Below are positions 945-56,042 of a stretch of DNA of 64,000 bases, piece by piece (the first letter of the stretch is position 1; each line of letters starts with the position of its first letter). The DNA is from Paragordius varius (Eukaryota; Animalia; Nematomorpha). The DNA is taken from positions 12,214,001-12,278,000 of the forward strand of contig OZ176051.1 of NCBI GenBank assembly GCA_964247055.1. Direction: 5' to 3'. The notes below the pieces were generated by a model. The model was given only the letters and a program-made list of their open reading frames with translations, did no database searches and had not been told where the DNA came from. The position numbers and the translations under genes are program-made.

Positions 945-950
945 TTCCAC

Positions 951-3173
951 ACAATAGGAGGTTATACACATGGACCTCTCCATGTGGTAATAAGAATCAA
1001 ATTGATTACATAATATGTTCTCAAAAATGGAAATGCTCTATAATCGATACCAAAACAAGCAAAAGCAGCGATTGCTCTAGCGATCATGAACTTCTAATAA
1101 CTAAAATCAAACTTAAAATAATTAAAAATAAGGTTAAACAGATATACAGATATGACATTCGGAACATTCCAAATAGTTTTAGAACAGAAACCAAAGATAG
1201 ATTAGGAAGATTGGACAATGGATGTAGCTCAGAACAATTATGGGGAACGATAAAAATGTTGCTAATGAAGTGGCAAAAGAAAAAGTGCAGTGAGTAAAGA
1301 GGAAAGATAACAAAATATCTGAAAAGAGTATAGAGATAGCAGAAAAGAGGAGAAAAGCTAAATCAAGGGGTGATAATAAAATGGTAAAATTATATAACAA
1401 AGAATTTCAACGACAAACAAGGAAGGATTATGAAGACTTTCTTAATAAACAATGTCTGGAAGTGGATTTAAATAACAAAAAAGGATTAATGCAACCAATG
1501 TTCCAGAAACTGAAGCAAATGATTCATAAACCTTTTATATCATCACAAAAGATTAAAAAAGAGAATGGCACCATATTGTGCAAACAAACAGAAGTACGAG
1601 GAAGATGGAATACACCCAAAAACTCTATCAGGCTCCTCAAGCAAAGGTGTTGCAATTAACAGAAGAAGAACGTGATCCAGATATATTAAGAGAGGAGGTT
1701 GAATTAGCCTTAAAACAAATTCCAAACAACAAAGCGATGGGGTTAGACAATATCCCAATAGAGTTCATAAAAGCTATTCCTGTAGAAACGTTACACAAGT
1801 TATGTCAAAAGGTGTGGGAAACATGTGAGTGGCCAAACGACTGGACATCATCTGTATATCTCCCAATATACAAAAAAGGAGATGTACTCCAATGCGAGAA
1901 TTATCGGAACATATCTCTTATTAGCCACGCTAGTAAGGTCTTACTAAAAGTAATACAAAACAGAATGCACAGTATCATACAGACAGAAATACCAGAAAAT
2001 CAAGCCGGATTTATGAAGGGAAAAAGCACAAGAGACCATATCTCAAACATGAGAAGGATAATGGAAACATCAAAAGAGTTCCAGAAATAATTATACATGT
2101 GTTTTATTGATTACAGACAAGCATTCGATCCAAACTATGACTCCTTGTGGGAAACATTAAAGTTACTAGGGTTATCGTCTCACTTAATAAGATTGATTAG
2201 CTCTCTGTATGTAAAACAAAGAGCTATTATTATAACTCCAGCGGGGGACACAGACGAAATACCTATCTTGAAAGGAGTCAGACAAGGGTGTTGCTTATCC
2301 CCTTATCTGTTCAATATGTGCACAGAAATGATAATGAGGAAGTTGGATGGTAATAATATTGGAGTAAGAATAGGAGGAAGAACATTCAATAATTTAAGGT
2401 TTGCAGATGATACCACTCTTATAGCTGAAAGTGCAAATGATTTGAAGGAATTGATTGAAGAGATTCCAAAGGAAAGTTTGAGGTATGGTCTTAGGCTTAA
2501 TCCTAACAAAACCAAAATATTATGTACAGGAAAAAAGCCCACAATTATAATAGAAGGAGTACAAATAGAATATTTAAACAGTTGACGTTTTTGGGCGCAA
2601 TAATTTCAGAGGATAGGTCTTCAACTCCTGACATCAGAAAGAGAATAGGATTGGGTAGAGAAGCGATGACCATATTAAAGATTTGGAAAAACAAAAGCGT
2701 AGGAGTTGAAACCAAAAAAAGATTACTCTACTGTTTCGTTCTCCCGGTCAACACATATGGATGTGAAAGTTGGACTCTCAGAAAAAGGGACAAAGAAAGG
2801 CTCATGGCTTTTGAAAGGAGTTGCTGGCGTAGGATGCTAGGATACACCTGGAAGGATAAAATTTAGAATGAAAATCTAATTACAGAAATAAAACCTAAAA
2901 CAAACATCATGGAGATACTAAAAAGAAAGTTAACATATTTTGGTCATGTCATGCGATCGAACTCTCTGGAGAAAGATACAATGTGTGGGAAGGTAGAAGG
3001 GCAAAGGAAACGAGGCCGACCACCGATGAGGTGGTTGGATATGATAAAAGAAGAGACCAAAATGACACTGAAAGAGCTCAATATAGCGGTTATAGAAAAA
3101 AATGGAAAGAAATAGTTAAAACTATATCCAAAAAGTCGTTTACGACTTAGGAAAAACCAACCAACCCAACCAA
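951..3173 (+). mobile_element. 5'-truncated RTE-clade LINE (end of endonuclease, RT, C-terminal domain, 3' tail), inserted antisense into a copy of the same family; defective
   Basis: RT motifs GVRQGCCLSPYLFN, LRFADD, YGCESWT, KLTYFGHVMR and GRPPMRW, with stops and frameshifts. 3' stem-loop AAGTCGtttaCGACTT at 3133-3148 and a (CCAA)n tail. Flanked by the 6-bp TSD TTCCAC (945-950 and 3174-3179). Confidence 0.95.
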
Positions 3174-3179
3174 TTCCAC

Positions 3180-4310
3180 TTCCAGACATTGTTTATTAAG
3201 AAAATCTTCATAATCCTTCCTTGTTTGTCGTTGAAATTCTTTGTTATATAATTTTACCATTTTATTATCATTAATTTAGCTTATGTACTCTTTTCTGCTA
3301 TCTCTATACTCTTTTCTGATATCGATTTGTTATCTTTCCTCTTTATCTTTTGCCACTTCATTAACAACATTTTTATCGTTCCCCATAATTGTTCTGAGCT
3401 ACATCCATTCAATCTTTCTAATCTATCTTTTGTTTCTGTTCTAAAACTATTTGGAATGTTCCGAATGTCATATCTGTATATCTGTTTAACCTTATTTTTA
3501 ATTATTTTAAGTTTGATTTTGGTTATTAGAAGCTCATGATCGCTAGAGCAATCGCTGCCTTTGCTTGTTTTGGTATCGATTATAGAGCTTTTCCATTTTT
3601 GAGGATTATTATGTAATTAATTTGATTTTTATATTTACCACATGGAGAGGTCCATGTGTATAACCTCCTATTGTGTTGTGGAAACCATGTGTTGGTTATT
3701 ATCATCTCATTTATTGATCAGTGCTTCCCCGGCCTCGTTTCGTTCTCCCAATCCATATGGCCCGACTATTGAATCTACTCTACCTCTACCAACTTTGCTG
3801 TTCCAATCCCCTCCTATGATAATCATATCTCCTTACTTCGTTTCATCCAAAACTATTTGCAACGTTGCATAAAAGTCCTCTATGTCTTCTTTGGGAGCGT
3901 TTGACGTAGGAGCATAGAATACTATGTATGTGAATTTAAGTGGCTTGGCATTCAGCCTAATACTCATGATTCTGGTTGTATATGGTGTATAACTAATGAG
4001 ACTTTTATTTAATTTGTTTTTTATTAATACTACAACGCCTTCAGATTTCTGGTCATCTCTCCCCGATCTTAACAATGTATAATTTTCGTTTTGTACTTTC
4101 GCGCTACCTTTTTGCTTGGTTTCCGTTAGACCCAGTATGTCTAAGTTCAATCTTTCCATTTCCTTTTCAATTATCACCTGTTTGGTTTCTGTTAAGGAAC
4201 GTATGTTCCAGGATCCAACTTTGAAAAGTCTTGTTAGGTTTATATAGTAGAACTATTTTTTGGCAGTAATAAACGAGGGTGGTTTGCCATTGCCTTCCCT
4301 CTCACTTACC
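3180..4310 (-). mobile_element. RTE-clade LINE, outer copy, 5' part (5' UTR plus AP endonuclease)
   Basis: APE motifs VGSWNIRSL, LDILGLTETK and YAPTSNA. 3180-3690 is the reverse complement of 951-1466. A Bov-A-like 5' UTR motif GGGAAGGCAATGGCAAACCAC lies at ~4278-4298 on the minus strand. Confidence 0.92.
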
Positions 4311-8800: not shown

Positions 8801-10210
8801 TTCCAAAAAATGATTACATGAAGGTTTAGCGAAAATACGTTATGAGCACATATTCAAAAATTTAAATTACTTTAAAATGTGGTATAAAACAATTTTTTAG
8901 TGAATAAATAATCTGTAAGTAACAAATTAAAAAAAGATGGACCCATTTAACTAAATATGGTATTTCTCGATGAAAATTTTTGTTATATTAAATACGAAAA
9001 TTATTTTTTTAAAATATTTAACATTAAATATAAAGTATTTTCTGTTTCACCATTTGAAACTCTATATTTAAGAATTTTTCAATGGTATTGAGGATCAATT
9101 CAATATGCGTTATATAACTTGGTAGCAAATTTTGGCAGTTATTGATATAAAAAATTATCAGTTTGCATTAAATTAAGAAAACTAACCAAAGCTTAAACAG
9201 TAAAAGCTCTGTAAATTGATGATTTTTTCCAGATTCAATATAATATAAAAGCAAATAATTACATATTTTATTATTATAATTATTGGGTCTATTAATAATA
9301 CTACAAATGTAAATATGTTTGTTTATTCCAGATGCAATGATAATTTTTGGTAACGGTAAAAAAATCGACAAAAATTTTTAGCTGAAAAGCATTATAGTAA
9401 ATATACCTTAATGCATATAAGATATTAAGAGTGACCTGCATAAGGTTGATATTAAAAATACATCTAATATTGTAACTTTTGATGTTTATATTTATTGATA
9501 ATAAAAGAGAGTGTTTCAGAATTCCGTTTTAAAAGGTGTTTTCAATTTTGATTTCATTTTAAAATAAATTTTTTAAATTATCGCTTCTATCTTTTTATTA
9601 AATGGGTGTAAAAATATATAATAATAACAAAAAACGGCATATAAAATATGGACAAATTTTTAATAATTATAAAGCCAATTAGTAAAATCTATCGAATATT
9701 TTGCAAAAATTGTAAAAAATTATACTCCAAGTCGTCATAAAAACTTACATTCAAAGAGGCGTTTTCGTAATTCATTGGCCTGATCTTCAATACAACTCCG
9801 ATATAATGTGTTAACTTGTAACGATAAATCATTCGGTGGTTTTTTTAAAACATATTCTACATCAATGTTTGGCTCTTTCTATAATTAATTTATAAATGTA
9901 CATCTATAAAGGGTAGTGGAATAGCATCTGCTTTCAGCAGAGATCGTAAATACTGCAACTTTGTCTTGTATTCTATTAGATTATTGTTTAACGGTTGGCT
10001 GTTTAAAGCATAATTATATTGGTTAAAATACCTACAATGTAGATTGATTGGCCATATCAATTAAATAATTATCCAATGAATGAATATACTTAACTAAATT
10101 TATAAAATTACTGCTTTTAATTTCCAATTTGGATAGTTAGGTTCAGAAACCATATCTTCGCAAATATGACATAAACGCTTAAAATTTATTTCTGATCTTG
10201 ACATGGACAT
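5861..10210 (-). CDS. USE1: Vesicle transport protein USE1 (ER Qc-SNARE), 254 aa. Exons: 10210-10112, 10088-10036, 9998-9902, 9878-9749, 8605-8403, 6043-5861
   Basis: MSMSRSEINFKRLCHICEDM...NWKLKAYIHSLDNYL matches the USE1 N-terminus. SNARE motif LSSHKTMQDDLMDQMSTLVGNLKSNVNLAGQFIRKDNQ, and C-terminal TM WTWILLATVFGMFILMIAFIKLF. All introns are GT-AG with matching phases. AATAAA overlaps the stop codon. None of these exons is in the ORF track. Confidence 0.9.
7595..7953 (+). CDS. Terminal exon of a Ly6/uPAR (three-finger)-like, probably GPI-anchored protein, nested antisense in USE1 intron 5
   Basis: Acceptor TTTTAG at 7594, then an open frame GNISLVSSGY...QCVKT...HTCSTDLCN, a polar linker and a hydrophobic tail YIVIFAVYLIMFLN*. 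No intact upstream exons were located. Confidence 0.55.
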
Positions 10211-16035: not shown

Positions 16036-19000
16036 TTATTTGCAAGCGTATTCTTCTCGTTTCTCGCTACAAGTTCTACATTCAACATAACAACACCAAT
16101 GAAATTTACAATGGCATTGCCATACTCGGTCAGTTTGAAAGGTATTGTAACCGCGGCCACAGCATAATACATCACAACTATCTTTGCCTTGGGAAGTTTT
16201 ATTACAAGATCGTCCATGAGTACCTTTTAGTATCGCAAAAATTTTTTAGTACAAAAAATGAAAATAATATTAGTATTCCTCAAGATTCGGAACGTGTATA
16301 TACCTAATGATCCAAGACTTATATCTTTTTCGCAATAATTGGGCGAGTTTTGAATGTAAACCAAGTGTCCCTTTCGTGGTTTTTTATGGATTCCTTGTAT
16401 ATGATCTGGCTGTTTAAGTTTCAAGAAAACGGGACGTTGTGTTCTATCATGCATTAAAAACAATTAATTCTACTGAGCGCATCGTATAAATGTATATTTA
16501 TATACATGGACTCAAGATTAGGATAAAAAAAGCAAATCATATTGATAACTCAAGATAATCAATTTAGTTTAATTTCATGTCGAGACATCTTATACTTTCG
16601 GTTAGGTAATGTTCAAAAGAAAAACATTCAATTATCAAAAATAAAAGATATTCTATGTTGCTGCATAATAATTTTTGGTCAAATATAAATGCTTTATTAA
16701 TAATATACCACAAACTAAATAAAATAAAAATTTTAATTTTAATGAAATTCGGCATGAGGTTATAGAGTAAACGCAAAAGAGCTGATGTCGGGTTGATAAT
16801 TTTTTTATATGTTAAAAAAGATAAAATAAATTTTTAAGGAAAGACACTGTGCATTATCTATTCTTTCTAAAGGTATTTAAAGCTTGATGTAAACATTATA
16901 AAACACCTTCAGATAATTTAATACCTTTCTTTTTATTTGTTAATGGTGAAAAATTGGTCTATATATTTGTATGTATGATTCAAATTGTAGTGATGCTAGT
17001 ATATTTATAGTCTACACTTATTTTATGATGCAAATAACGTATCTTTAGTTTATATTAGTATTCCTCATGCAAATACCCTCCTGGAATTTATATTTGTGTT
17101 GTTTGAAATAATGTAAATTGCCTTTATAGAAGATTGTATATATCAGGGGTGGCCAACGAGGTGACCGCGGTCACTTTCGTGACCGCGACAACTCAAAAAG
17201 TGACCGCCTGAAAATATTTTTTTTAAAAAATTTTTATTGATTTTATTCGGATAGTTGGCTACTTCTGAGCGAATTTAAATTTAAAATACAAAAAAATACG
17301 GTTTAAATTAAAAAAAACGTCTAAGAAAAGGGTGAAAAAAAAATTCATATGTTTTGGAGCATTTGCATAAAACTTAAAATCAGTCATTTCCTCTGAATAT
17401 ATCAAAACTTTGAGCAAAGCTTATTCATAAATCAGAAGCATAATTGTGAAGTTAGATTTGATTTGATACACCAAAAGTAGGTTTTTAAAACTTATATTTT
17501 AGAATGAGCCAAAAAAAGTTGTACAGATACAAGAAAGATTGGGAGCATAAATACTTTTTTATTATGATAAATGAAACATGCACCTGTCTAATATACAATA
17601 GTACTGTTGCTTTGCCCAAAAAGTCAAATATTGAAAGACATTATAGATCTCTGCATCCACATTACTCCAAAAACTACCCCTTACAAACTCAAGAACGCAA
17701 CATTAAAGTAAAGGAATTAAAAGAACAATTATCCGCCTCACAAAATAGCATACTTAAATACAACAAAGACTATAAAAATGCTACGATTGCTTCATTCAAG
17801 GTAGCGGAAATACTCATTCGGAACAATAAGCCATTCCAAGATGGTGAAATATTTAAAGAAGCCTTTATTAGCGCTTGTGATATTTTATTTGAAAATTTTG
17901 ATAACATAAATAATATTATGACAGCTATTAAAAGCATAAGCTTATCGAGAAATACCGTTATGCGCAGGGCTGAAGATATTAGTAATAATCTTGATGAAAT
18001 TTTACATGAAAATATTAATAACTGTATTTTTTTTCCTTGCAACTCGATGAGTCCACCGATTATGTTGGAATCGCCCAATTATGCATTTTTATTCGTATGA
18101 TATTTAGTGATTTATCTGCAAAGGAGGAATTATTTATAATACCTCTCCACGAACGAACCAGAGGGCAGGATATTTTTGATTCTTTTTATAAATTTATCAC
18201 AGATACGAAACTTCCCATCGTAAAACTCGCATCTATAACTACTGATGAAGCTCCAGCTATGATTGGCGTTAACAACAGCTTTATCGCTTTATGTAAAAAT
18301 CACAGTGCATTTCCCAAGTTCATTGATTACCATTGTATAATCCATAATCAAGTTTTATGTTCAAAAGTTTTAAAATACCATCATGTAATGAACCCCTGTT
18401 TTAAAATTGTTAACGCCATTCGAACAAAAAGCTTGTCCCGCCGCCAATTTCGAATTTTGTTAAATGAGTGCGGCGTGGAATATGGAGAACTTTTATTACA
18501 TACTGATGTAAGGTGGTTGAGTCGTGCCGCATTTTTAATTAAATTTAGGCAACTTTTACCACAAATAGAAATTTTTTTTAGAGAATTCTAAATTTTCATA
18601 CCCTGAATTGAAAGATCAAGATTGGCTGCTTGATCTTGCATTTTTATGCGATATCACGGAAAAATTGCATAAATTAAACATCCAATTACAAGGAAAAGAT
18701 AAAACAATAATAGATATGATGGGTGCTTTACAATCTTTTAAGGAAACACTAACAGTAGTAGAAACACAATTAAAAAACCGAGATTTAAAACATATTTTTA
18801 ATCTGGCAGCGGTGTCTGAAAAAATAGAGAATCTCTCTTTTGAAAAATATGCAGATGATATTGGTCTGCTTATTAATGATTTTGAAAAACGATTTTCATC
18901 TATAACTCTAAGACATCGCTATTTTTTTATCTTGCCCATTTAATAATATTAATAATGTTGAATATATTGCTCAAAAACTCAGCCACTTTCTTGGTGTACC

Positions 19001-22000
19001 AAATTTAGCAGAGTTGGAAGAGGAATTAATAAATGTTGAATGCGATATCCATCTAAAATCATTAGGATCAGATATATATAAATTTATAAATAAAGATAAA
19101 TACCCCCATATTTGGAAAACCGCTGCATTTTTCAATTCTTTTTTTGGCACATATTTATGTGAATCGGCTTTTTCAATTATGAATGCTATTAAAACTAAAC
19201 AGAGGTCACAATTAACTAATAAACATTTAGAATCATGTTTGAGAATTGCTTTGACTTCATTTGAACCTAATTTAGATAAACTTTCTGAATTTTTTCGCAG
19301 TCGGGCGTTTTAAATATTTTTTTCTTTATTAAATATGAATGTTTATCGAGTTGAAATTTCGCTTAGGAAAAAGCCGATTTACTAAAAAATATGTGGATAG
19401 AATTAAAACTGATACAATTTTAATGTACTCTTATTTATGTTCAAATTATGGTTCTAAATTGGAATGCTATTTTTTATTTCTTTTATTTCTTTTATTTTTT
19501 GTATCACAATGTATTATCCCCTGTAATTTCAAATGCATTGTTTAAATTTTTATATTGTAAAATTTCATATGATAGAAATTTAATATATAAATATTTTGAA
19601 GTGTTTTATGTTGGTTAAAAATTTAGGTAGTTAATAACCCGTTGTCTTTTAATTAAAATTATTTTTGTATTTGGTTGAGATAAAAAAACTACAATTTTAA
19701 AATGGTTTAAACAAGTCACTCTAATCTGTAAAGCAGGTATATACATCATTTAAAGTGTTGATTGAGTTTTTTGATAAATATTTCTGGGTGACCGCGAACT
19801 CTTTTTTTAACAAAAAAGCCAAAAAAAAGCTCCAAAAAAAGTGTAGCCACCCCTGGTATATATATATATATATATATCGCTCTATTTTTCGAATAAATGC
19901 ACTATCGTTTGCATACGCTAGTTAATATTAAGTTTGAGGAATACGTTGATTATATGACAATTATAAGAGCTAACGAGATTCCAGTAAGCGACCAAGCCCT
20001 CAGAACAACTCGCTTATGTCGGTCTGTTGGTTGTGGGCAAAAGTCAACGATTGTATACGAAAAAAATAAGGCACAACATGGAGCGATTAAGACAACGGGC
20101 CTAAAAAAAATTTATCCCACAAAATCGAAAAATCGATTTGATTGAGGAACGTGTTCGCAAGGCCTTCGTCATTGGTTTACGGCAACGTCAACCGGAAATC
20201 GATATACATTCGAGGCACCCCGATGCCGAGATCAACGGGCAACCCGCGCCACTAAAAACGATAATGAATCTCGCACTAGCACACGAAGCTAGGGCCGGCC
20301 CTAAAAACAATAATTATAATACCAATCATGGCAATGGTATTAATTTAAATTGATTACAACACAACAATAATATTATGGCCATGCGTTAACGACGGCCAGC
20401 AGCAGCTAACACATTCATGCAATCGTTGTAGGCGTAGCCATGAACCAAACATCTGTCCTGCCCGGAACCGCAAGCAATAAATGCGGAAAACTCAACCACT
20501 TCGCTAAAATATATAGATGAAAAAACGCTGCCATGAGTATGTTCAACCCCCAAAATTATTGAAAGTAATGCTAATGTCACCATGGACATTAAAAATGATG
20601 ATAAACAATACAGAACGAGAATTTATCGACACGGCCTATATCATGGTAATCAACTTTGAGACATGTAGTTAGTTGGTAAGCCAAACCTAAACCCATACCG
20701 CCAGTAAAAGCCTACAATAATTGTATAGTACCACTATTGGGAGTAACAACGGTTACAATGCTAATGAATGAAAACTTGGGGAATGCAGAATTTTGTGTAC
20801 TGAAAGAGTAACAATGCACTCATCTGTAGCTTGGATTGGATCACGAAATTCAACATCGACATTCCTAAAGTACAAATTAATTTTCTTAAATTTGATAACA
20901 TTGATGAAAATATTCCTAATCTATTAAAAAATAGGTTGGCAGTGTGGCGGTAAAAATTGTGTAGCATCCAACGCCTCCACCAAGGTTGTCGACTGGCGCT
21001 TCCCTTAAGAGCAAGAGAGTCGCTAAGACTGCAGAAGTTAGACATTTTGGAAGCAAATTGCAATCTTACACCGCTTACATGGATTACGCAAATCGTCGAC
21101 ATATTGAAAGCGAACGGAGAGCTGAGAATCTGTAACGACTTTAGAGTCACGATCAACAACACGGACTATACCATATCATCCCAACTTTTTATGTTGGTAA
21201 GTACGATTGATGAAAGACAAACTTTCAGTAAGATTAATCCTAAGGCGCCTAACTCCAAATGCCGATAGCTAAATAATCGCAACACCACCTAACGATTTCA
21301 ACGCACAAAGAATTTTTCCGCTATAAAAGGATGCCTTTAGGACAAACAGCACCGATAATATTTTGGCTAGTCATGGATTAGGCTATGACTGTCCCGTGGT
21401 ACTTGTGCATATTGATGATAGCTGGCAAGTCTGAACAGGAACAAAATCTAATGTTTTAAATTGGTTAGAAATGACAGGTTTTAAATCAAGAAAAGATAAA
21501 ATAAAAATTGGTGAATTTTATTAAATTATCTGGGATTTGAAATAAGTAATAAAGGTATAGTACCTTTAATAATAAAGAAAAGCAATTCATGATTTTAACC
21601 AGTGGATTAAAAATCTTTAAGTAGTTTTATAATTTTTAATATTCCATGGAAAATTTATACCCAGGCTTCGATTGCTTTTAGTTGATTATAGTTTAACAAG
21701 TAGGGACTTAAATGGAACTGGTCGGAAAAACACGGGAAAAGTTGAAAAGCAGCAAAGGAATTGTTAAGTTTACAAGTATTTTTATCACCATCCAATCTGG
21801 ATAGAAAAGTAGTAATTGAAATCGAGATGGTGGAAGGAAAACCTATTTATGGTTTCAGAAAGTGACCGCAAAACTGAATTACTTTACAATAGAAAGGGAA
21901 CTCCAGGCTATTGTTTTTGCATTAAAAATAATAACTTCGTATATGGTAGAATTAAAGTTTTGACATCACCACTGTTTAGATTGATCACTAGGGATAAAAT

Positions 22001-25000
22001 TCAGAATGCGAAAGTTAAATATGGGTTAACCGACTGAATGATTATCAATTATAATTAAGTTATCAGGCGAGTCCGAAAAATTAAACCCAATTATTTGTCA
22101 ATAAGCCCCGGGAAATGTTGATACAACTGATATGGTTTACATGGTAACGAAACATATAAGGTTTCTAAATTGTCATAGCGTTTATTTAAATCGAGATGAA
22201 ATCCGGAGAGAGACAGTTAAGGATAAAATCTTGCCAAAGTTATCAAGGCGATTACTAATCAATATTGGAGCGATTTTGAGTTGGTGGTTTATAACAGATA
22301 AGAAGAATTTGCGTCAATACGGTTAAGTTTAAACGATCGAATCATTATTCCGTAAAGTTTACAGGACGTGGTTAATTATTTGCACAGCGGTCATAATAAT
22401 TGAATGCCATGAGAGCGATGGCAGGGTATGCATGGATTTTATTGATCCATCCCATTGCTTGTAGACATTTACTGTTTATAAAACATGTAATGTTTCTGCC
22501 GATTGCCGTTCGTTAAGTTTCATTGGAACACATTCAATAGTTCTGCCTTTTATCGTTTTCGCAATAATATTTATCAGAAGAAAATCTCTTTCACTTTAAA
22601 ATGACAGAAATTTTGGTTTCATGTTCTAATCGATCGAGCATGTTGATTATATGATACTAATACTTATGAATTTTAACAGCCTTTTCCTTCTGATGAAAAA
22701 GTCATACATGCCGAAAATGTTCTTTTTCAAGCATAATTGGACTTGATTACGGATTGATAAAATAGTTAGACACTAGTTTTTGACAGTCAATTTCAAGGTG
22801 TTTCAGATGATTGAAACGTCAGTAATAAATTAATCGCCTGCCTATACTTCCAAGGTTTTCTCGAACCGGTGATGACTTATGATTACACGAAGAAAAATCG
22901 GCCAATATTGGCTCTTCAATTTTAGGAAAAACCCATTTATTGTTATACAAGGTAAAAGATTAATTATTAGATTTTAATTTAGTAAATCATTATAATAAAT
23001 TAGTTTTATTACTTAATACCTTATAACTTTTCGCCTAATAGATTTTCCCCGATTTTGATTTCAATTGGGCCAAATAATAGATAATTTTATATTGTAAATA
23101 TCGCATAATGTTTATTGTATCACTCACTATATAATAAAAATTATAGCTTTAGATCATATTTTATCAGCGAATATTTGATATTTTTTGTTTAATCAGATCT
23201 CGCAGCTATCCCAACTACTCGGGATAAACCGTAAATAGAGACTTAATTATCTATTTTAATATTAAATTTCAACAAAAAACTTTTTGAATATATAACTCAA
23301 TTTAGACTTGCGCTAAATCATATACAGATTGTTATTTTTATACATTTTATTTTTTAACTAATGTATATTGTTCACCAGTTATAAAAATATGTAAACATTG
23401 TTATACCTCAATATAATTTATCATAAATTTGTGTTGTATATTGGTTAAAAATATTTTTTACCAATATTTTCGGATTCCAATATTTAACACTAAATTACAA
23501 TTTCCTGTTCGCGGTGACATTATGGGGTAGTTTTTGAACCAGAGATTATAAACAAACTATTTTGATAGTTGTTTTGGTCAAAAATTTAATTATCAACTCT
23601 CTTCTCCTGTGGGATAAACAAATCTAAATATCTTACAGTTTTTTAACTTCTATATAGTCTCAATTCAAAGCTTTAAACGATTGGAACAAACAGCTGATAA
23701 TATCATAAAATATTAAATGCTGGTAAATTTTAATTTGAAAGCTTACCAAAGTTAATAACTTATACTTTTATACCATAATACATAGTTGTTTGCGTGTTAA
23801 ATAAATACTAAAAAATGGCGGCGAATTCGATATAAATATTTATTAAAATTTTGCATTTATTTGAAAAAAAATGTATCATGCGCCTATTAAAGAAAGCGTA
23901 AATTAAAATTTTACAATAGTAATAATAACTAAATTTTGAATCGTTGGATTATACGGCTAACTTAAAAATTATAAAGTGTTAATAGCACTTAGATCAAATA
24001 GAAAGGCTGATTATATCAAATAATTATTTTAATTTTCCCTCCAAAACTGAAAATATATTTATTTTTCATCGAACATAATATTTGCCGTAAAATTCTAAAA
24101 AAAAATTACAGGCTCAAAATCTGATATGAGCATTTTCTGACGATTTTATATTAAAAGTTATTTTGTTTAATGCGCCTAAAAAACCTTAGATGCTGATTTT
24201 AAAACTAACTTCATATCCAAACCACAATGTGTTGAAATCAATAAAAAAATTATAACCATTTTTTTTATATTTTACACCTTTGCTAATGTATAACAAGAAT
24301 ATTACCCTATAAAAGGCTCACAACAAAAAAAATGTTACTAATTCTAGTAAACGCAACATAATCCAAATAATTAGAATAATCCCGCATTGTCGACAGTATT
24401 TTCTAAAAATTTTCAATAGGAGATAATTTTTTATTAGAAACTAATTATAAATTTAAAATAGTTTTTTATGCTAATATAGACTATAAGTGACGCCTTACAT
24501 TCGAGAACAAGACAAAAATAAATGCAATTCTGATAGGAATTACGACCTTTTTATTATTTTCCTCTAAATATTAACTCTATAATGGGGCAAATATTTTTTG
24601 GTAAAATAAAACATTATAAAAACTTAAGGATCGCAAAAAATAGAAAGCTTATCAAGTTCCATCCTACAGTCGCATACAAATTTACCTTCGATCCTTAATA
24701 GGTTCAACCTGTTTAGCTTGATCGTATTTTTTCTTAAGGACATCCCCTATCCGCCGAAAAGATGGCAAAATTACCCAACAAGTTTTAAGGGTACAAGAGC
24801 CTGAAACTCCGTGACATTTGCAATCCACATCGGCATTTACCCTAAGCGTCTTTAAATAAACAAAATATAAATATTTTAGTTAATAAGGTAAATTATAATC
24901 GGTTGTTTATGTTTAAAATGATGGCAAAAATTAAATAATAAAAGACCTAATGGTAAAATAAAAAAACCTTTCTTCCCACTCGATTATTGTGCAAATTCAT

Positions 25001-28000
25001 TAAGGATCGTTCATCGCCTTCGATTTCTCGAGCATCCACGAAGCGTCGTGAAATTTCATTCCCATATCTGTTTATTTAAATAAATCGTTAATTATAAATA
25101 CCAGGTGGAGTCATAAGTTATTACTGTAATAACTAAAAGAGGACGCAAGTGAAGTATACAGACTTTTAATGATATAGACCTTTTTCGTTCATTTAACAAT
25201 AAATTACAAACACTCATTTGAGTCCGCAAAAACTAGCGCTTTAGATTTATCATAATCATATCGAATTTTGTGCATGGTACCACTTGCCATCAGAAGAAAA
25301 AGACTGTTGATAGTTATCGTTTGCTACCCGAAACATATGGTGAACATCCTCTATCGCAGTGGTGTCCAACACAAATGTTTATGCGATTGCTTGGATTAAG
25401 TTTTTTTTATTTTTAAGCCCAAATTTGGATGATATATTCTAAATAATAGTGATTGAAATCTATTTTTTTATTCTTTTTTAAATTGGAGCACTGTTGTACC
25501 GAAAAAAGCGTGTTGGAAATCTCTGCTGTATCGATATAGAAGATGGTGTCAAACCTTAAGAGTTGAGAAAGAGTGGAGGTGTTCTAGTAAATTACACAAC
25601 TGTGATGACGCTAAGATACAAGAGTATTCAAACGTAACATTAATTGGCAAATGCATTACATATATCACCAAAAACAATCTATAGATGCCTACGAGAATAG
25701 GTACATGGGTCTCACACAGAAGGTATATTAAATTGAAAATCGTAAAGTGACTTCTAATTCTTCAATATCACGACAAGAAAGCATTCATTGTCTTACTTTT
25801 CATATCCAAAGCAGAAAATCGTAACTTTCTTTTTAATCGGTTCACATACCGTCGCATAATTGTTTAGTCTGTGTCTGATGTAAGCGATATTGTGCATTAT
25901 TAACTGAAACTCAGTGAAACCAAAAAATTTTAAACCATTCATGAATCGAAAAACGAATATACCAGGATACATGGCAAAATGATTATGTCACATGCCAATG
26001 CTTCGTCTCTCACAACAAAACCCGTGAAAGAGACCTTAAATTCGCTTCTATAAAAAAATCTATTGCATCTGCTAAACACTCCTGACCTGTTGCCATCTGA
26101 TTAACGACTTCGCAATGGGGTGCGCCCTTGCAAAGCAGCACTACAATAAATTCGACTTTGCAAAATAGCTTGACAAATGGTTTTCCGCAAAAGACGATCA
26201 TTTTTTTGGAACGGCATTCATATATTAACAGAGAGATGGGCATAATGTATGGAAGCCGAAGTTCAATATTTGATTTAAAAATGAGTTATTGATTTTCTCT
26301 CAAAATCACATGTTTTTTTTGCGAAAAAACGGTAAAAACTTTTGGATGTATGAATCGTTTTTATCATGTACTCTAGATTGGATATCTTTTTTTTTGATAT
26401 AATAATATTTTTTAAAATATGTTTTATTAATACAACATTATATCATACAATTATCCCTAATTTAAAACCATTATATTTGTTTAAAAAAACAAATAGAGCT
26501 AAAAAATATTAGAATATCTGCCTGTTAATCAGGGCAAAAATGCAAACCAGTGCGCATTAATTTTATGTAGTTTATTTCTCATACAAAGGATAAAATACAA
26601 ATCAAATCAATTTATATCATTAAAGTATTTGATGAAAACATATTGAGAATTAATTAATGATTCAAACTTACCTATAATCAGCGGAACAGCCACCCCATTT
26701 GTAATCTGAACCAGCCAGTAAACTTCTATTTTTGCCTTTTCCAATCTTCCCCTTATGACGACTTTTGTCACAACCACAGTTGGAAATGTTACCTTTGCTA
26801 CAAGCTTGTATGATTGCGTACATGACGCCTGAAGATGTGGCGGCATACATGAACGCAGCTTCTCTGCTTGCTAATTACAGTATTGTACAATAAGATAAAC
26901 ATATTTTAGGACAAACTCTAATGATATTTTTTCCTGTAGATGTTGATTGGCACAAAATAAATAACAACCTTAAAATAATTTATATTTACAAAGAATGTTA
27001 TCACAGAATTTTTGAATTGGTTTATATGATTTAAAATGGAAACATAATAAATCCAATGTTGAAAACGAGTCAAAAGTAAAATACTGTAAAAACACTATTT
27101 TTTGAAAAATCTTAACTGTAAAATGGGTCTTGATTTTCTTGACCGATCGTGAGTGAGGATAGTAGGTTGGGGTTAAATCATGCCATGCAAAATATTTAAA
27201 CCTGTGTTACTCGATTAATCAAGCTAAAATGCTTAATTTGGTTTATATTTTTACTTTAATAAAAATAAAACAGAAGCGATAACATGGTTAATGTATGATT
27301 TAAATTATAAATTAAAGCCTTAAACACGCTACTTGCATCAATAAATTTTATTAAATCAAAATACCGTATTTTAAGTAGAAATTTTAGTTCCACTTTATGT
27401 TTCCAAAAAATTAAGGATTTATTAATTTTAAGCAGTAATAATGAAAATTATTTATTCCTGTATTAATATATTCAGAACACCATCTATAGTCTTTGAATGC
27501 CAATTTTTAATTATTATATGACTGACATAAATAAATTATAGCCAAAATTATATTTTTTAAAATTTAATAATTTTTATTGTAATCAATAGTATGAGTGTTG
27601 AATTGAAACAAATCTACCTCTAAGAAACACAGGGCCAAACACAAACGGAGATTCCGATGTCGTCGGATTCTGGTAAGAGCTAATTGAACCTATGTTAGAT
27701 CTTTGTTGTTCATGATGAGAGGATGATTGAAAATTATTATATTTCGGCAGATTTATATCATTATGATATTGTGACAATTTATATGTATCCATGTGTTGAT
27801 TTTGATGCAGGACCGTTGATGACATGGTAGGCGAAGTCATTTCGAAATACTTTATGGAGGCTTTGGTAGAGAGTGGTTGTGAGGATGCCATAACAGGGAC
27901 TGTCGTGCAATTCCATCGATGAGATCGAAATTGCCATTTGCATTCAGATTGCCCGAGGCGAGCACCCTGCCAAATAGCTATAATAGCCTCTGGAGTATTT

Positions 28001-28518
28001 TGACACAATAGCCTTTGTTGGGGCGCTAAACCAGGAATTTTGCTGCAAAGTATGTTTGCCCCCAAAGCCACTACGGAAGACAGGGTCCTATCAAATAAAC
28101 ATGATATAGTTAGGATGACAGTTATCAAGGGTACAATGCGAGAAGAATATGCCCTATGGGTGTAATTACAAATACAATGCTTGTTTGTTGGTTTAATACA
28201 TTTTGTGCGGGTTGAGGACGGTTTATTACCTCGTGAAGTAAATATATATTTGTTAAAAAAATTAACATAAATTCGTTGATTACTAAATTGAATTGAATAT
28301 ACAATATATTTATTTAGTTTGTTGCTTAATATATGTATAAAATATAAAAGTAGATCATCTTGGAACTTTATCCGTTTGGTAAAACCGAAAAAACATTTGA
28401 TGACCCAATTTCTATTGTAATAAAATTTTTTGATATTGAGCGAATTTAGCGGTATAACTGATTGACTAATACCATAAAATATATTTAACCAGAAGGAAAC
28501 TGTTAAAAATTTCCACAT
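16036..28518 (-). CDS. wnt7: Wnt7-subfamily ligand. Exons: (28518 or 28087)-27618, 26870-26672, 25067-24968, 24849-24686, 16443-16304, 16223-16036. The 5' end is uncertain.
   Basis: [26 protein letters not shown] is diagnostic of Wnt7. Also [15 protein letters not shown]-like [30 protein letters not shown] (lipidated Ser intact), [11 protein letters not shown] and [11 protein letters not shown]. 24 conserved Cys were counted and splice phases are consistent. AATAAA lies 8 nt after the stop. Confidence 0.95.
17144..19855 (+). mobile_element. Full-length hAT DNA transposon (Buster/Charlie/SPIN, GTF2IRD2-like) in the 8.2-kb Wnt7 intron
   Basis: TIR CAGGGGTGGC(C/T)A at both ends. Perfect 8-bp TSD GTATATAT (17136-17143, 19856-19863). 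Subterminal GTGACCGCG repeats. Confidence 0.95.
17504..19313 (+). pseudogene. hAT transposase with at least three frameshift or stop lesions
   Basis: [52 protein letters not shown] and TYLCESAFS motifs are spread over four ORFs in different frames. Confidence 0.92.
19900..22900 (+). mobile_element. Heavily decayed Ty3/Gypsy LTR retrotransposon (gag-pol), within the Wnt7 intron; boundaries approximate
   Basis: Zinc-knuckle-like [11 protein letters not shown] (~20470), RT-like LQKLDILE...[26 protein letters not shown] (~21030-21160) and integrase-like YLHSGH (~22380). Many stops. No LTRs identified. Confidence 0.8.
23522..23960. mobile_element. Diverged copy of MITE family A
   Basis: GGGGTAGTTTT terminus, AAAATGGCGGC and ATGCGCCTATT motifs; boundaries approximate. 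Confidence 0.6.
25101..26345 (+). mobile_element. Decayed mariner transposon (~1.25 kb) in a Wnt7 intron
   Basis: TA followed by TIR CCAGGTGGAGTCATAAGTTATTAC. Transposase relics [33 protein letters not shown] and [16 protein letters not shown]. Confidence 0.85.
25357..25525. mobile_element. 169-bp hAT-type MITE inserted in the mariner
   Basis: Ends CAGTGGTGTCCAACAC / GTGTTGGAAATCTCTG. TSD CTCTATCG / CTGTATCG (7/8 match). Confidence 0.8.
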
Positions 28519-29388
28519 CCGGCATAGGTGTTTGGAAATATAAAGATAATAATCGATTTAATCAATTTATTTTATAATCATATTTGGATAATTTGTGGTC
28601 TACTTTCAAATAAAATGTCAATAAAATTTTAGGCTTGAAACTTTATAAACGCCAAAAAAGAAGTTATTAACCAAACTTTTAGTAAAAAATTATGAATTTC
28701 TCTCAAGTACTTAATAAACTTTTTCTACCTGCACAAGCACTTATGAGGTTAATAAAGTTTTTTCCTCCTTTTTGCGGTACGTCCCATCCATAATAGTTAC
28801 ATATTGTAAATTATTTTATATATTATGCCTATAAAAACATATTTTTTCATTAAAATGCTACAAAAAATATAAAAACTAATATGTATTGTACTAACTATAT
28901 TTGGATAGGATTATATATATTGTTCTAGACATCAAAAATATAATTTCATTTAACACCGTGTTTAAATTACTTCACTCAAATTTTGTCTCTCCTCGTTTTC
29001 CCATCTTAGGACATTTTAATAGCTTTTCCCATTTCTTTATTAATACTACATAACACTAATATTGTATTTTTCCCCTAAAGTTAATGTTTTAAACTCTAAT
29101 GAATATCACAAAAGATATTTTAAATGTGTCGGCATAAAAAGGTACATTTTATTGGCTTTTAAGAGTTGTTCTTAATGTAGACCAAATATTCTAGTTTTTT
29201 TAGAAATTTGCGACAAATTTAATTGCCATGTCAAAAAGGTAGAGTCTGTTAGCTCATAAAAATATATCCTTATGAAAAATAAATACAACTATTGTTATAT
29301 AATTATTTAATTTTGAATCGATATATAGTACCAAATCACATATGACTAACCTCAATAAGTATAATTCTTTACAACAAAAGGCTACACC

Positions 29389-41648: not shown

Positions 41649-44600
41649 TTAAAAAGTTTTTTGGGATTCTGCTGCTTTAGCCTTTTCCTTTTTGAGTTTT
41701 TTCAGATCTGCCGCCATTTTTTCTTCCTCCTTAACAAAACATGCAAAAATTGTTGATAAAACTTTTGTATAGAGTTTATAAAATTATTTTAAAAAAATGG
41801 AACAAAGTGAAAAACCTCTTGAGTATATGGCTTAAGGATTTCCGTTACTATACCAGTACCAATAGTTTTATCTCCGTCTCGCAACGTAAATTGTTTGCCC
41901 GTTTCCAGAACCATTGGTTTAAGCATATTAATTTCTATGACAGCATCTTCTCCAGGCATTATCATATTCTAACATTCGACAAATTTTTACATTAAACAAA
42001 CCTTCAATAAAAATAAATTGGTAATTACATGTAGAACATGTTAGTAATATATAGTGTTGCGTAAAAACGGTTAATAAAAATTAATAAAAACAATTATGCT
42101 TTTTCAAACCTTAGTTTTTATAACCTTTTTGTATTGCAAAATAAGGAGTAAAGGTGTAAATTAAGATTCTTGATTATATATTCCAAAATTTATATGGTTT
42201 ATGTAGGAAGTATCATGATTTACAAAAATATGGTTGTCATATTTAAAAAATATCTTTTAACTTTTACGTTTTGTCTGTAAAATTTTAATTTTTAAAACAG
42301 CTAGTTATATTTTAGAAAAAATACTATGCGTGAAAAAGAACGAGTAAAATATAAATAAAAATAATAAGGTAAATGGCTTCTTATTTGGAATAATAGTTAG
42401 ATTTAATTTTACAACTCCACAAAATTTTATCATAAAAAGGTGGAAATATTCAATTTTTTTTAATTTTTATTTCTAAACATTTCCAATCCTAAATCATTGG
42501 CATAACGTTTATTTTTATAATAAGATCATATAAATATGCAAGTGTATTTAAATTACAATATACGCTTAACAGCTTTTTGTGGTAAAATTTTTTATCATTA
42601 GTAGAAAAATAATAACCTGTCCGGGATTCAAGAAAATATTTCCGACACAATTCCACGTCATACAAAAGAGCATCGGATGGTGATGGTTAAGGATGGGCTT
42701 ATCACGACCCCCTTCAGCTTTGGATAAGAAGTAAACCTTCCATTTAAGATAAAAAATATATAAACGGTGATGAAAAAAAAGCAAAATAAAATTATGAAAA
42801 TATTATTAAAGTATTATTTACTCCATCTTATTCTTCTCACAATAAAAGATTAAAAAAGTAATAATGTTGAGATATGTTATGCTAAAAAAGGAAAAAATTT
42901 AGCCAAAATGATTACTTGTGCCTTAAACCGTTTATGAGTGAAAACAGTTTTGGGTTTGGCTACAACAAAACCGCGTTTAACTTCCTCTCGTTTAATGCCT
43001 CGAACCAATAGGCCGATTTGATCGCCGGCTTCAGCTTTATCAAGGGTTTGTTGGAACGTTTCAACACCTAAGAATCAAAAAAATGGTATTTTAACTTACC
43101 AAACATTAGATTAATATAATATATGAAGCATAAAACCAAGGGCAATTTTATTATCAAAGTCCTATTGCCACCTCCCCGTGGTGTTGGCTGGGGCATGAAA
43201 ATGCGCTAACGGCAAATGCCAGTTTTCTAATGATCTGTAAAATCATTAGTTGTACACAAGGGCATGTGTTACGTAAAAAATTGCTTCACTAAACCATGAA
43301 GTATAATAATATGAATATGAAAGAACACTAAAACCTTACCAACATCTCAAACAATAATATTCCAACTTATAATTATTTTTATAATATATAGATCGTAATT
43401 TATGGAATTAATTACTTCGTGGTCACAAAACTCCGAATATGGAGTCCTAATATTATCCATATATAAAATTCTTATAATAACATGCATCTGCTTAGCACGA
43501 TAGAATTAAAACCAAAATATTTTTAAATATAATATGAAATTATAATCAACAGAAAAATATGTGGAAACTAATAAATTTAGCCTCATGCATATTACCAAAA
43601 TATTATCGCTCATAATACACAAATTTCATTTTATGATTTATCATGATATTATCTGTGATAATAATTTTCGGAATCGATTGATAATACTATGAAAATAAAA
43701 AGATTAATTGATTCTTCTATAATGCAAAAATGTTATAATAAAATTAACATTATAATAAACCAGTTATTGTAGTTTTGATTGGTTTTATACCGGAACCAAC
43801 TATTTCAGCTTCCATGCCTTTATTCAACATTCCGCGATCCAATTTGCCAGTTAATACAGTGCCACGGCCTATAAATATGTTATTTTAAACAAAAATAAAA
43901 ATTAATTATTTTAGAGATTTGAGTACAAAATATCACTAACTTTGCCAAAATGTTGGTTGATATGTAACACAGGAGAGATTAAATGTAAAACTTGTTGGCA
44001 CTTCAAATATTTTTTGAAGCCAGAAATACCCAAAATTATAAAGTAATATTCTTATTATTGAAATTAATTTTTTAGAAAATATTGATTAATGATACATATT
44101 GAAGTTAAAAATATTTTTATCTGTAGAGTGAAAAGCCCCAGTGACCATAATTGCGGAAAAAACAAGGCTGCTCAATATCCGAATCATGACAGTTGATGAG
44201 ACAAGTTCATATTAATTTTAATTATTCAGTTTTTTCTTGTAACAAATAATAATTACATCTTATTTTTAGCTTATTATGATAGCTCCGAAATATTCACAAA
44301 GTTTTTTATTTTAAAAATGAAAAAGGTTAAAATTTCTTCAAGCTAAACCAATTTTGCAATAGAAATATTGTTTGATTTTATAAAATTTCGTATCTAGATA
44401 ATTTTTCAGCCGCAGAAATATTTCGGAGAGCCTCATGTTGGATACCTAAAAGCATCAAACACAACCATACATAATTAATGAAAACTCGATCAGTATAAAA
44501 ATATATGTAAAATAAAAGATATATCATCAGATGGCCCGCTGCTATCAAACATGGAACATTAATGTATTAAAAATGCAAAAATGTTCTATTTCGCAGATCA

Positions 44601-44802
44601 ATTTGTTATCATCATAAGTTGTTTGTAACTTTGTTACATTAACTAAAGAATAAAGCTTATTCTCTTATTAATAAAAAACCAATTATAACAAGAATGTTAA
44701 ATAACAAAATATCAGGATATAGTAAAATAAAATATATCTCATATTCGATTACAAACTTAATTTAATAATTTTTCTCCAATATAAGCCATCTTTTTACTTA
44801 TT

Positions 44803-44858
<56 letters not shown>

Positions 44859-47800
44859 TTTATTATTAACCAGATATGGCGTACACATTTTCGATTGGCA
44901 TCATAAAGGGTTTATCAAGTATGCGTTCCGGAACAGGGATATGGTTATCACAAGCTTCAAGTAATTTAACAATACTTTCTTCACCCAATTTCGGGTTTTT
45001 TTCCTGCAACACACATTATGATAAAAATTATGGCTATATAAGGTATATAAATAACATGAAAAATGAATCAAATTATAACCACTTTGTTATTTCATTTTTT
45101 GATACACTATAATTCGGGGTAATTTTATACCCCAAATCTTAAAATTGTAAATATACTACTGTTTGAAAAGTTGTAATCGTCAAAATTTAATAAAAAATTT
45201 TTTGTAGTGTTTAAAAAATTCTAATTTTTTTTTTGTAATAACTTCTCTAGCGCCATATTTAGATAGCTACAAAAACGAAAAAGAACAGCTGAAATTAAAA
45301 TATATAATCTATGAAAATTAATTTACATTTTTAACCATATACAATTATTTGCCTGTTAAATTAGCGATTTTAAAAAATTTAATTTTATACAATTTCACTT
45401 TGTTAAATTTTTTTGTATCACAGGCTTAAAAGGCCAAAGAAATCAAATTTTAAAATTCCCAATACAAAAATATTTCTATTAATTTTTAAATTTTAAATGA
45501 CTCTGATGTTTAAAACTACACCATAAGGTCATGAAAGGCTAGTGCAAGAAACTTATAATGAACATCCTATTTGCTCTTAACCTAATTTAATAACTAAATG
45601 AAATTTATTCAATCAAGTCAACGGCTTTTAAAAGGAAACGAAGAACTTTTATTTCTGCTATTTTATACCAAAAATAATGTAAAAAATGATGAAAAACGAT
45701 AAAATATTAAACCTCTAATGCCATTAGAGCGGAACCACATACGATAGGAGTATTATCGCCATCATAGCCATAGGTATTGAGTAATTCACGTATTTCCATT
45801 TCCACCTATAAAAAATATGAGAAAAATAGACAATGTTTTAGATCCTACAAATATTAAAAAAAACTAAATTAGGGATATATTTCATGGTCAAAATAAAACA
45901 ATTTAATATGTATAAAACATACCAAATCCAACATTTCTTGATCTGCGGAGTCGGCTTTATTAATGTATACAACTATATTTTTGATTCCAATCTAAAATTT
46001 CAAAAAAATGAGTAAAACGCATTTAATTTAGAAACAAATTATTGTTTTATTTTCGAATAAGCCAATATAGACCAACACAAAGAGATCCAGTTATAAATAA
46101 AAAATTTTTAAGCTATACCATTGCCTCCGAAAACAGTATTGAAAATATTATTAATTCATAAAATCAAAAATTAAGCGTCAAAGATGTGTATATAAAAATT
46201 GGGGAAATAAATATATTAAGTATCAATGAAATTATTACTACCAATAAGTAAGCCATACAAAACAAATAATATGGGTTAATAACAGCTCTTTAAATTAGTA
46301 AACCTTTAAATCTGGAAAATACACCCCTATAAATTGCAAATAAATTTTATAATTGGTCTGTTTGCACTTAAATAATCTAAAAAAACCAGTTACTAATATG
46401 TGATTCAAATTATATATATAATATTTTTAGTTAAATTTATAAAATGATTACAATTTGATCTTTTAACGCTATTTTTATGCTAACACATATAGAAAAATAC
46501 GTCAAAGATTATCTTTCTTCTTAAATATAAAGGCTTAAATTCAATTAAGGGCTTTCTTAATAACAAAAAAAGGTGCGCATAAAGTGTAACCATCAAACCT
46601 AAAAAAAAGTTTTGCACCAAAACAATTATGAGAGAAGGATGAATAAATTCCACAAACAAAATTAATCTGAATCGCAACTAATAAACTGTAACTATAGATA
46701 AGTACTAAAAATTGTTACTTGTTTAGCCAAGAGTAAATGTTCACGAGTTTGAGGCATGGTTCCGTCGGTCGCAGCTACAACCAAGATTGCACCATCCATT
46801 TGAGCAGCACCGGTTATCATATTCTGGATTGTTCGATAAAATTTATAATATACTTCGATTGACTGAGAATACATATTTTTTGGCCAACAAGTATTATATT
46901 TATAGTTAGTTCCAATGATAAAAATATGTAACAAAAATTCCAACATATTCTTATAAAAAATGATAAATCATTTAATATAAAACGGCTAATTTATATTATG
47001 AATAAAAGCATACACATAAATTTGGAAAAAATAAGTTTATGCGGCATTTACAAACTCACTAACTAATTAATAATTTTGCTTAACAAAGATATGACACTTT
47101 ACAACACCAATACTATAATTTCAATTTCAAAATCATATTTAACCCAAATTAAAGCGTTCAAAATTCCAACCATTTGTGATCTCTATAGGCCTGCAACATT
47201 GTTTTAATAATATAATTATTAACAGGATTTTATCTACTGAATATTAGCATTGAACCGTGGAAAACCTGGCGAAAATTTAAGTAAATTTATAGATCCTATA
47301 ATATTCCGTTGTGATACGTGGGTTTAAATTTATAGTGCGCCACTCATTGTTGCCACTCGGTTTAAATCAGGCGCGTTCAAAAAAAAGTTTCAGTCAAATT
47401 TCAAAAGATATAATTTTTCAAACTTATCTATAAATCCTGATTCGACAATCGATTTGCAATTATTAAGAATGAGACAAGAAAACTTTAGGATTAAATTTTT
47501 TAAAAAAACTGGCTCCTTAGCTTAAAACGGTACTCTTTAAGTTTCTTATTGATGTCGCTTATTAGTGTCCCAAAAAAATATTTTAAATTGTTTAACGATC
47601 TGCTCTTAGTATTTTTAAAATATAATAACTAACATATTAACCTTAATATAATCCAAATGACCTGGACAATCTGTGTGTGCATAATGTCTGTTATCCGTAT
47701 AATATTCAAAGTGTGCTGCATTTATAGTTATGCCACGAAGTTTTTCTTCAGGAGCTTTGTCGATTTCATCGTATTTTTTAAAATTGGCCAAATTCTTTTT

Positions 47801-48094
47801 TGCCAACACTAAAATTATTTAACCCAATAAAACCTTTGGTTATTGCAGCGGACAGAGTTGTCTTCCCATGATCGACATGACCAATCGTCCCAATATTTAT
47901 ATGAGGCTTAGTTCTTACAAATGACTTTTTCCCTCCAGCCGGGCTATACTGTGGTGCAGCAACTGCGGCAGATAAGCCTCTATAAATATTACAATATAAA
48001 ATCTTAAATATTAATAAAACATTACTTGATTATATGTTTTTAAGGAGGAAGCTGATATATTTGAAATTAGTTTTAGGTTTGTGGCCATATACAT
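41649..48094 (-). CDS. TUFM: Mitochondrial elongation factor Tu, 472 aa. Exons: 48094-48026, 48002-47834, 47808-47642, 46823-46719, 45991-45923, 45805-45713, 45003-44871, 43868-43761, 43067-42916, 42736-42617, 41968-41816, 41729-41649
   Basis: [35 protein letters not shown] and MPGED motifs. N-terminal transit-like peptide. All junctions are GT-AG with consistent phases. AATAAA overlaps the stop of the last exon. The first and last exons are less certain than the core. Confidence 0.95.
43140..43215 (+). ncRNA. HDV-like self-cleaving ribozyme candidate (nested double pseudoknot)
   Basis: P1 GGGCAAT/GTTGGCT (G1-U wobble, one G-G mismatch); P2 TTGCC/GGCAA; P3 ACC/GGT; L3 TCCCCGT; J1/4 GGG; P4 GCAT-gaaa-ATGC; J4/2 GCTAAC (catalytic C at 43206). 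Confidence 0.7.
44808..44854. repeat. (AT)n microsatellite in a TUFM intron, ~16 nt from a splice donor
   Basis: Direct reading. Confidence 0.95.
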
Positions 48095-48594
48095 GCTGGA
48101 TTATGATAAACGTATTTCTAAAAGTGTATGGGTTGCAAATTTATTATCAGCGGCTATCAGTATTAGTATTCTAGTTTTTTCCCAGAACATTTAAATATTA
48201 TAAATAACTCGATGGCTAGAATTAAAAATATTTTTTTCTGGGTAGCACAGAAAGATTCAAAGAAATTAATTTGCCGCAAATTTTACTTCTAAACAATTAT
48301 TATATTTTTAGTTAATTTTACGGTTAAGTATATAAACTTCTTTGGGGAATTTATTGTCGAAGTTAATATTACTCATAAAAAATTATATTTTAAACAGTGT
48401 GTTAAGCTCAGCTTAAATTTGGGTAGCACGATTAAAAAATAATATTAATGAAAAATACCAATTACATTTTATAATACACCATTAGAATGTATTATTATGC
48501 TGTAAGGACTTATAAAAAATAGTATAATTATTATTTTCATGACCTTTTGTGGTAGTTTTCCAGAGTGATTTGAAATTTGATATCTTAAAAAGCA

Positions 48595-55727: not shown

Positions 55728-56042
55728 CTTTGCAGTGTTCCCGAACATGTCCAAATTATTGCGATACCTTTGATCTTGTGAAATGCGATTGTTCATGCTC
55801 TGCGACCCCTCGTTGCTATGACGCTTTTTGTGACCCTGGTTCCGGTTACAGAATTGACTATACTAATGGATGCTATACCTGCGAAGGTAATATATAATTG
55901 ATTCCAAATTGAAGTCCCACACAATGCCATAAGGGAAGTTAATCTAGATGTATGTTTACAAGAATCCCCCATTGATCAAGATTATGTAATTTATATAAAC
56001 AGTAAAGAGGATGAATGTGCCACCATTGATGAAAATAAATAA
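55728..56042 (+). CDS. Cys-rich exon (55728-55886) of an uncharacterised, probably extracellular protein; possible terminal exon 55915-56042 after a 28-nt intron
   Basis: TTTTCAG acceptor, then LQCSRTCPNYCDTFDLVKCDCSCSATPRCYDAFCDPGSGYRIDYTNGCYTCE (10 Cys), phase-1 GTAATA donor. Higher GC than the flanks. No upstream exon found. Confidence 0.6.

Follow-up and report, generated by a model that had tools for sequence, protein, structure and literature searches.

The nuclear gene for mitochondrial EF-Tu in the horsehair worm Paragordius varius raises the question of how short an animal intron can be. On the minus strand of the window, by which we mean the whole 64,000-nucleotide stretch of DNA analyzed here (28% GC), 25 nt interrupt an invariant stretch of the EF-Tu reading frame. 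A first-pass annotation, made from the letters alone, had read this segment as a phase 1 GT-AG intron and assigned it to a class of tiny introns of 23 to 37 nt. Is the segment an ordinary spliceosomal intron, and does it have companions that would make it one of a class?

The EF-Tu gene and its second intron

We mapped the EF-Tu exons with a bacterial EF-Tu (L014:1396-2583) as guide and then read each boundary individually. In tblastn, this query returned collinear EF-Tu pieces spanning residues 3 to 354, and the exon pieces gave ordered Pfam matches to GTP_EFTU, GTP_EFTU_D2, and GTP_EFTU_D3. Searches were run exon by exon; exons 1 and 2 were joined solely for a frame check of the models of intron 1. 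The gene is intact, with 11 exons (Table 1). Exon pieces of its G domain are 70 to 86% identical to bacterial EF-Tu, and the protein has the three domains, the P-loop, and the DCPGH motif in common with the mitochondrial EF-Tu (TUFM) structures 7a5g_Z, 1xb2_A, and 1d2e_A in the PDB. Compared to TUFM, it is ordinary save for DCPGHLDY (47660-47642), which stands in place of the usual DCPGHADY of the bacterial sequences and the other animal sequences compared. The predicted start codon is the first ATG following an in-frame TAA. In the gene model, the size of exon 1 is consistent with a presequence of about 40 to 47 residues before the KKSF..KPH motif; no homology was found for this predicted presequence. 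Exon 2 corresponds to Pfam GTP_EFTU positions 1 to 24, and EF-Tu chains in the PDB align with it until ..AAITK.

Table 1. Coordinates of the EF-Tu gene and of the short-intron candidates (position 1 is the first letter of the window)
Feature	Position	Strand	Details
Mitochondrial EF-Tu gene (TUFM type, nuclear)	41789-48094	-	11 coding exons, 10 introns
EF-Tu exon 1	48026-48094	-	ATG at 48094, 23 presequence codons; end 48021 in 41-nt model
EF-Tu intron 1, candidate, 23-nt model	48003-48025	-	phase 0, donor GTAATG, acceptor TTTAAG, in frame
EF-Tu intron 1, rival 41-nt model	47980-48020	-	phase 2, donor GTTTTA, acceptor TTTATAG, in frame
EF-Tu exon 2	47834-48002	-	start 47979 in 41-nt model; presequence end and P-loop GHVDHGKTT
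EF-Tu intron 2	47809-47833	-	25 nt, phase 1, GTTTTA...TTTTAG
EF-Tu exon 3 (VLAKK...DYIK)	47642-47808	-	PDB alignment E 5e-23; covered by X7 and X8 transcript contigs
EF-Tu intron 3	46824-47641	-	818 nt, phase 0; same position in L001 and L002
EF-Tu exons 4-7	46823-46719, 45991-45923, 45805-45713, 45003-44871	-	guide alignment and boundary reading
EF-Tu exons 8-11	43868-43761, 43067-42916, 42736-42617, 41968-41789	-	guide alignment and boundary reading
EF-Tu introns 4-10		-	727, 117, 709, 1002, 693, 179, 648 nt
USE1 intron A, candidate	10089-10111	-	23 nt, phase 0; stop closes the frame unless removed
USE1 intron B, candidate	9999-10035	-	37 nt, phase 2; reading-frame logic
USE1 intron C, candidate	9879-9901	-	23 nt, phase 0; reading-frame logic, 53 open codons upstream, 47 downstream
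Probable 28-nt case of the first-pass annotation	55887-55914	+	cysteine-rich gene; 56 open codons upstream, 41 downstream

For intron 2, the first-pass annotation was exact in coordinates, letters, and phase. In the alignment to 6i8r_A, exon 2 ends at residue 34 and exon 3 begins, from 47806, at residue 36. The codon that the intron splits, G|TG, supplies the Val at residue 35 between them, and removal of the intron is therefore gap-free against the EF-Tu structures. Excision joins AAITK to VLA, with zero residues gained or lost relative to solved EF-Tu structures, and no other GT/AG pair nearby preserves the invariant stretch. Comparison of orthologous positions also agreed with an intron at this site. 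An ORF search with exon 3 led to two other animal contigs, L001 and L002, whose introns of 117 nt and 55 nt, respectively, fall at the same codon and likewise in phase 1. Six more animal exon ORFs (P0121, P0122, P0124, P0130, P0132, and P0137) end in AAITKG and then show read-through. A word search for hairworm relatives, using the exon 3 ORF and the stop-free stretch of exon 2, gave no match above 78% identity; it matched other animals and bacteria only. Very probably, the 25-nt segment is an ordinary spliceosomal intron (U2-type, GT-AG) that has contracted almost to the smallest size physically possible and that occupies an old intron site of animals. Such an intron would presumably be recognized across its own length (intron definition). 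The signals used may comprise a weak donor of the form GT(A/T)(A/T), a branch-like TAAT/TAAA motif whose putative branch A lies 6 to 11 nt before the 3′ end, and the AG that comes next; 25 nt would offer no space for a polypyrimidine tract.

We then considered transcripts and placed the contigs of three RNA-type runs (X6 to X8), which share their species label with the best DNA holder. In a transcript contig of 1476 nt from X8, intron 4 (45991|46719, 727 nt) has been spliced out, and so has intron 3, whose joint is given as 46823/47646, with 4 letters replaced. The loose end that precedes 45921 in this contig consists of exon 6 residues and reads the exon 5/6 junction (intron 5). The other loose end, behind 47810 on the coding strand, has the exon 2 residues ..AAITK running straight into VL with no insert; these 30 letters stop short of intron 1. 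The contig is about 82% identical to the window (78 to 85% in exons, below 90%), with differences mostly three bases apart, and so it comes from a divergent relative and not from the window genome. The mature mRNA of this relative thus has the predicted AAAG|TG junction. The differences fall mainly at third codon positions, which indicates that EF-Tu is under purifying selection. On the DNA side, the DNA-like run X4 shows depth throughout the 30 bins, that of the 25-nt intron among them. It covers the 25 nt and all flanks, and the segment is therefore present in DNA.

Since the transcript is that of a relative, we infer, rather than observe, cutting at the exact 25-nt site. This leaves some room for the alternative that the 25 nt stay in the RNA, in which case the locus could be a dead gene copy or an assembly error, or the DNA could be cut from somatic chromosomes. 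Yet each of the 11 exons has an open frame and the set is collinear with EF-Tu, the differences from the relative's mRNA have the codon-position bias given above, and the GT/AG ends lie exactly on an intron site common to other animals. Depth in the intron 2 bin comes from an independent DNA-like run, and the tiny-intron class recurs in USE1 (see below). Retention in the RNA is, with all this against it, very improbable.

Two observations on the runs themselves deserve mention. When X6 to X8 are set against X1 to X4, the RNA-type runs show an identity below 90% to the EF-Tu exons of the window (45600-48400), with differences mostly at third positions. It seems that the species label of the runs covers two well-separated species or that one data set is misidentified; a 2026 preprint reports such misidentification for another hairworm genus (10.64898/2026.02.03.703548). 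In addition, X4 contigs skip 996 nt (46992-47989) and 121 nt (48178-48300); structural variation could account for these skips, as could joins made during assembly of AT-rich sequence. The 996-nt skip would delete exon 3 and intron 2 of EF-Tu.

Two models of the first EF-Tu intron

About 70 nt past the EF-Tu ATG there is likely to be another short intron, either 23 or 41 nt long, which makes the short introns of this gene its first two. According to the first-pass annotation, intron 1 is exactly 23 nt, and the next AG downstream is out of phase. The first statement held in part: a GT..AG pair is present at 48025-48003, and its removal restores the frame. The second is true of the donor at 48025, from which both 47980 and 47978 are out of frame in translation; a 48-nt alternative for intron 1, which translates out of frame, was rejected. 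However, a donor at 48020, missed in the first pass, is in frame with the AG at 47981-47980, and the two delimit an intron of 41 nt. With an in-frame rival at hand, a length of exactly 23 nt is not established.

One X4 contig carries a 2-nt deletion allele at 48008-48009 (depth 406 of 731), a case of length polymorphism in a micro-intron. This deletion shows that the stretch of candidate intron 1 is non-coding in either model. In the 23-nt model, the allele would shorten the intron to 21 nt, a multiple of 3 (3n).

The two models can be weighed feature by feature. The donor hexamer of the 41-nt intron, GTTTTA, is identical to that of the confirmed intron 2, but GTAATG of the 23-nt intron is the stronger, classical donor. 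At the other end, the acceptor TTTATAG of the longer model resembles those of EF-Tu introns 5 and 7; against this, the 23-nt intron is almost a twin of USE1 intron A, and its TAAT has an A at position 15, as do the other introns of 23 to 25 nt. The 22 nt in dispute (48002-47981) are 95% AT, a composition found in 0 of 1404 exon windows (EF-Tu and USE1) versus 4.8% of long-intron windows, which favors 41 nt, although DNA coding for a presequence is weakly constrained and could drift toward AT. The 2-nt indel allele falls within the 41-nt intron, which is also in frame. We give the 23-nt intron roughly an even chance. That intron 1 is 41 nt (48020-47980) and not 23 nt is a serious possibility, although we hold it to be below even. 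What little likelihood remains belongs to use of both models or to another first exon. If intron 1 is 41 nt, the tiny introns lose one 23-nt member and the protein reads ..TYNQ-V-I-GLSAAV.., without ILYCNIYR.

Candidate short introns in USE1, and the position, motif, and length of the tiny introns

Short introns also occur as candidates in USE1, on the same strand. Exon 1 of this gene (10210-10112) matches Pfam Use1 positions 1 to 29 weakly, and later exons match positions 144 to 243; exons 2 and 3 gave no Pfam match. Downstream of the candidates of 23, 37, and 23 nt are at least two long introns. Both EF-Tu introns and all three USE1 candidates begin with GT and finish with AG. Lengths of 23, 23, 23, 25, 28, and 37 nt had been listed for the window in the first pass. 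We could verify 23, 25, 23, 37, and 23 nt as stated; the 28-nt case is only probably located, in a gene that gave no Pfam match and has no homology support. The tiny lengths in the window are then 25 nt, which is firm, 23 and 23 nt, and an intron of either 23 or 41 nt.

Exon maps of EF-Tu and USE1 confirmed that the tiny introns are the first introns in both housekeeping genes. They are spliceosomal micro-introns at the 5′ side of these genes, before introns of 117 to 1002 nt. In EF-Tu, the two shortest introns hold positions 1 and 2 of 10 (probability 1/45), the other eight accounting for the range just given. In USE1, the three shortest come first among at least 5 introns (probability 1/10). 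Combined by Fisher's method, the 5′ bias in these two genes has a probability of about 0.016. There is a precedent for a 5′ bias of short introns in Gyrodactylus (PMC4040987). The layout is not universal in the window: the first detectable intron of a Wnt gene is about 1 kb. This gene (16039-28557, minus strand) has a long first open stretch and introns of about 1 kb to 8 kb. Its Pfam wnt match begins at residue 174 of a 324-residue frame (27586-28557), and we saw no micro-intron where the gene starts. A coupling of tiny introns to the start of transcription, also proposed in the first pass, is speculation.

A TAA(T/A) element near the AG had been ascribed to all of the tiny introns. It is present in the introns of 23 to 25 nt (4 of 4), with the second A 6 to 12 nt from the 3′ end, but the 37-nt and 28-nt candidates fall outside this range. 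For background, 25% of the 23-mers drawn from the long introns pass this test. The enrichment then has a p of about 0.004 for the four introns of 23 to 25 nt and of about 0.04 for 4 of all 6 candidates. These values lend modest support to the element as a real feature; TAAT/TAAA as branch point would be a guess from the motif.

None of the six candidates is a multiple of 3 in length, in agreement with the first-pass annotation, which had gone on to propose that selection holds the tiny introns at such lengths so that nonsense-mediated decay (NMD) catches retained forms, as in Paramecium. The data of the window do not support this second step. An outcome of 0 of 6 has p = 0.09 by chance and p = 0.07 against the long EF-Tu introns, of which 4 of 8 are 3n; neither value is significant. 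Retention would indeed be conspicuous, since a retained intron 1 leads to a stop inside the intron and a retained intron 2 to a stop 18 codons on, and a precedent has been published for ciliates (PMC5014332). However, sequence that is 85 to 90% AT gives an early stop on retention whatever its length, and the X4 allele would turn the 23-nt intron into one of 21 nt, which is 3n. Selection for visibility to NMD is, on this evidence, unlikely.

Other lineages, gene prediction, and the rest of the window

How does the window compare with known systems of short introns? In a survey of 51 animal genomes, dated September 2026, introns shorter than 30 bp were found only in myxobolid Myxozoa and Dicyema, both of which have compact genomes, and Nematomorpha are absent from its main text (PMC13644364). 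In the literature on Nematomorpha, we found no published report of introns shorter than 30 nt. Like Dicyema japonicum and the myxobolid Myxozoa of that survey, the window has animal GT-AG introns of 20 to 30 nt at positions conserved across animals. Further points of likeness are the weakness of the splice motifs and the small number of A residues before the AG, taken as a putative branch site. The genomes of Dicyema and Myxobolidae are compact, however, and nearly all of their introns are short (medians of 22 to 27 bp), whereas the window belongs to a repeat-rich genome with micro-introns beside introns of 0.1 to 1 kb in one gene. A discrete short mode alongside long introns is a feature that the window appears to share with Gyrodactylus salaris and tapeworms, although the short mode of these flatworms is at about 32 to 36 bp, compared to 23 to 25 nt in the window (PMC4040987). 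Horsehair worms belong to a different phylum, within Ecdysozoa, and so the bimodal pattern would be convergent with that of flatworms. The 25-nt introns of Paramecium and other ciliates resemble those of the window in their length of about 25 nt, in the AT-rich DNA, and in the early stops that result from retention. Ciliates differ in being without a class of kilobase-sized introns, and their 3n depletion was demonstrated genome-wide (PMC5014332), while the sample from the window is 6.

The 25-nt intron of EF-Tu, a conserved housekeeping gene, is firm and extends the list of animal lineages with introns shorter than 30 bp. Its presence in a repeat-rich, hairworm-type genome also means that extreme shortening of introns needs no genome compaction. 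A broader proposal is that horsehair worms are the third animal lineage, and the first among ecdysozoans, with introns of less than 30 nt, kept as a separate and often cap-proximal class beside kilobase-sized introns. We regard this proposal as tentative and, for now, rather doubtful. If true, the spliceosome would be able to operate in two length regimes, and horsehair worms would differ from dicyemids and myxozoans in keeping micro-introns as a class apart.

Such introns also matter for gene prediction. Tools of the STAR, BRAKER, and AUGUSTUS type impose minimum intron lengths. Limits of this kind in gene finders and aligners would break genes with micro-introns, and, if the broader proposal holds, part of the "rampant loss of universal genes" in Nematomorpha, together with low BUSCO scores, could therefore be an annotation artifact. 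Introns of 23 to 25 nt, when overlooked, would frameshift gene models close to their starts. A Gordionus genome, which at 26.9% GC is close to the window in base composition, has a BUSCO completeness of only 71.6%; its annotation relied on STAR, BRAKER, and AUGUSTUS (10.1101/2023.06.26.546503).

Elsewhere in the window, a blind scan for GT..AG pairs of 18 to 45 nt that join open frames gave 829 matches, mostly transposon ORFs and AT-rich noise, and such a scan is useless without homology. Rfam gave no match at the gathering threshold in the whole window. Positions 1-4250 hold a non-LTR retrotransposon ORF twice, as near-duplicates in inverted orientation, with reverse-transcriptase-like translations on both strands. 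A candidate GT-AG intron of 26 nt lies on the plus strand at 17477-17502, just before an open frame of 198 codons with a match to a Spin-doc/C2H2 zinc finger, a type derived from transposons. The gene could be a domesticated or a mobile one, and the candidate a micro-intron within it.
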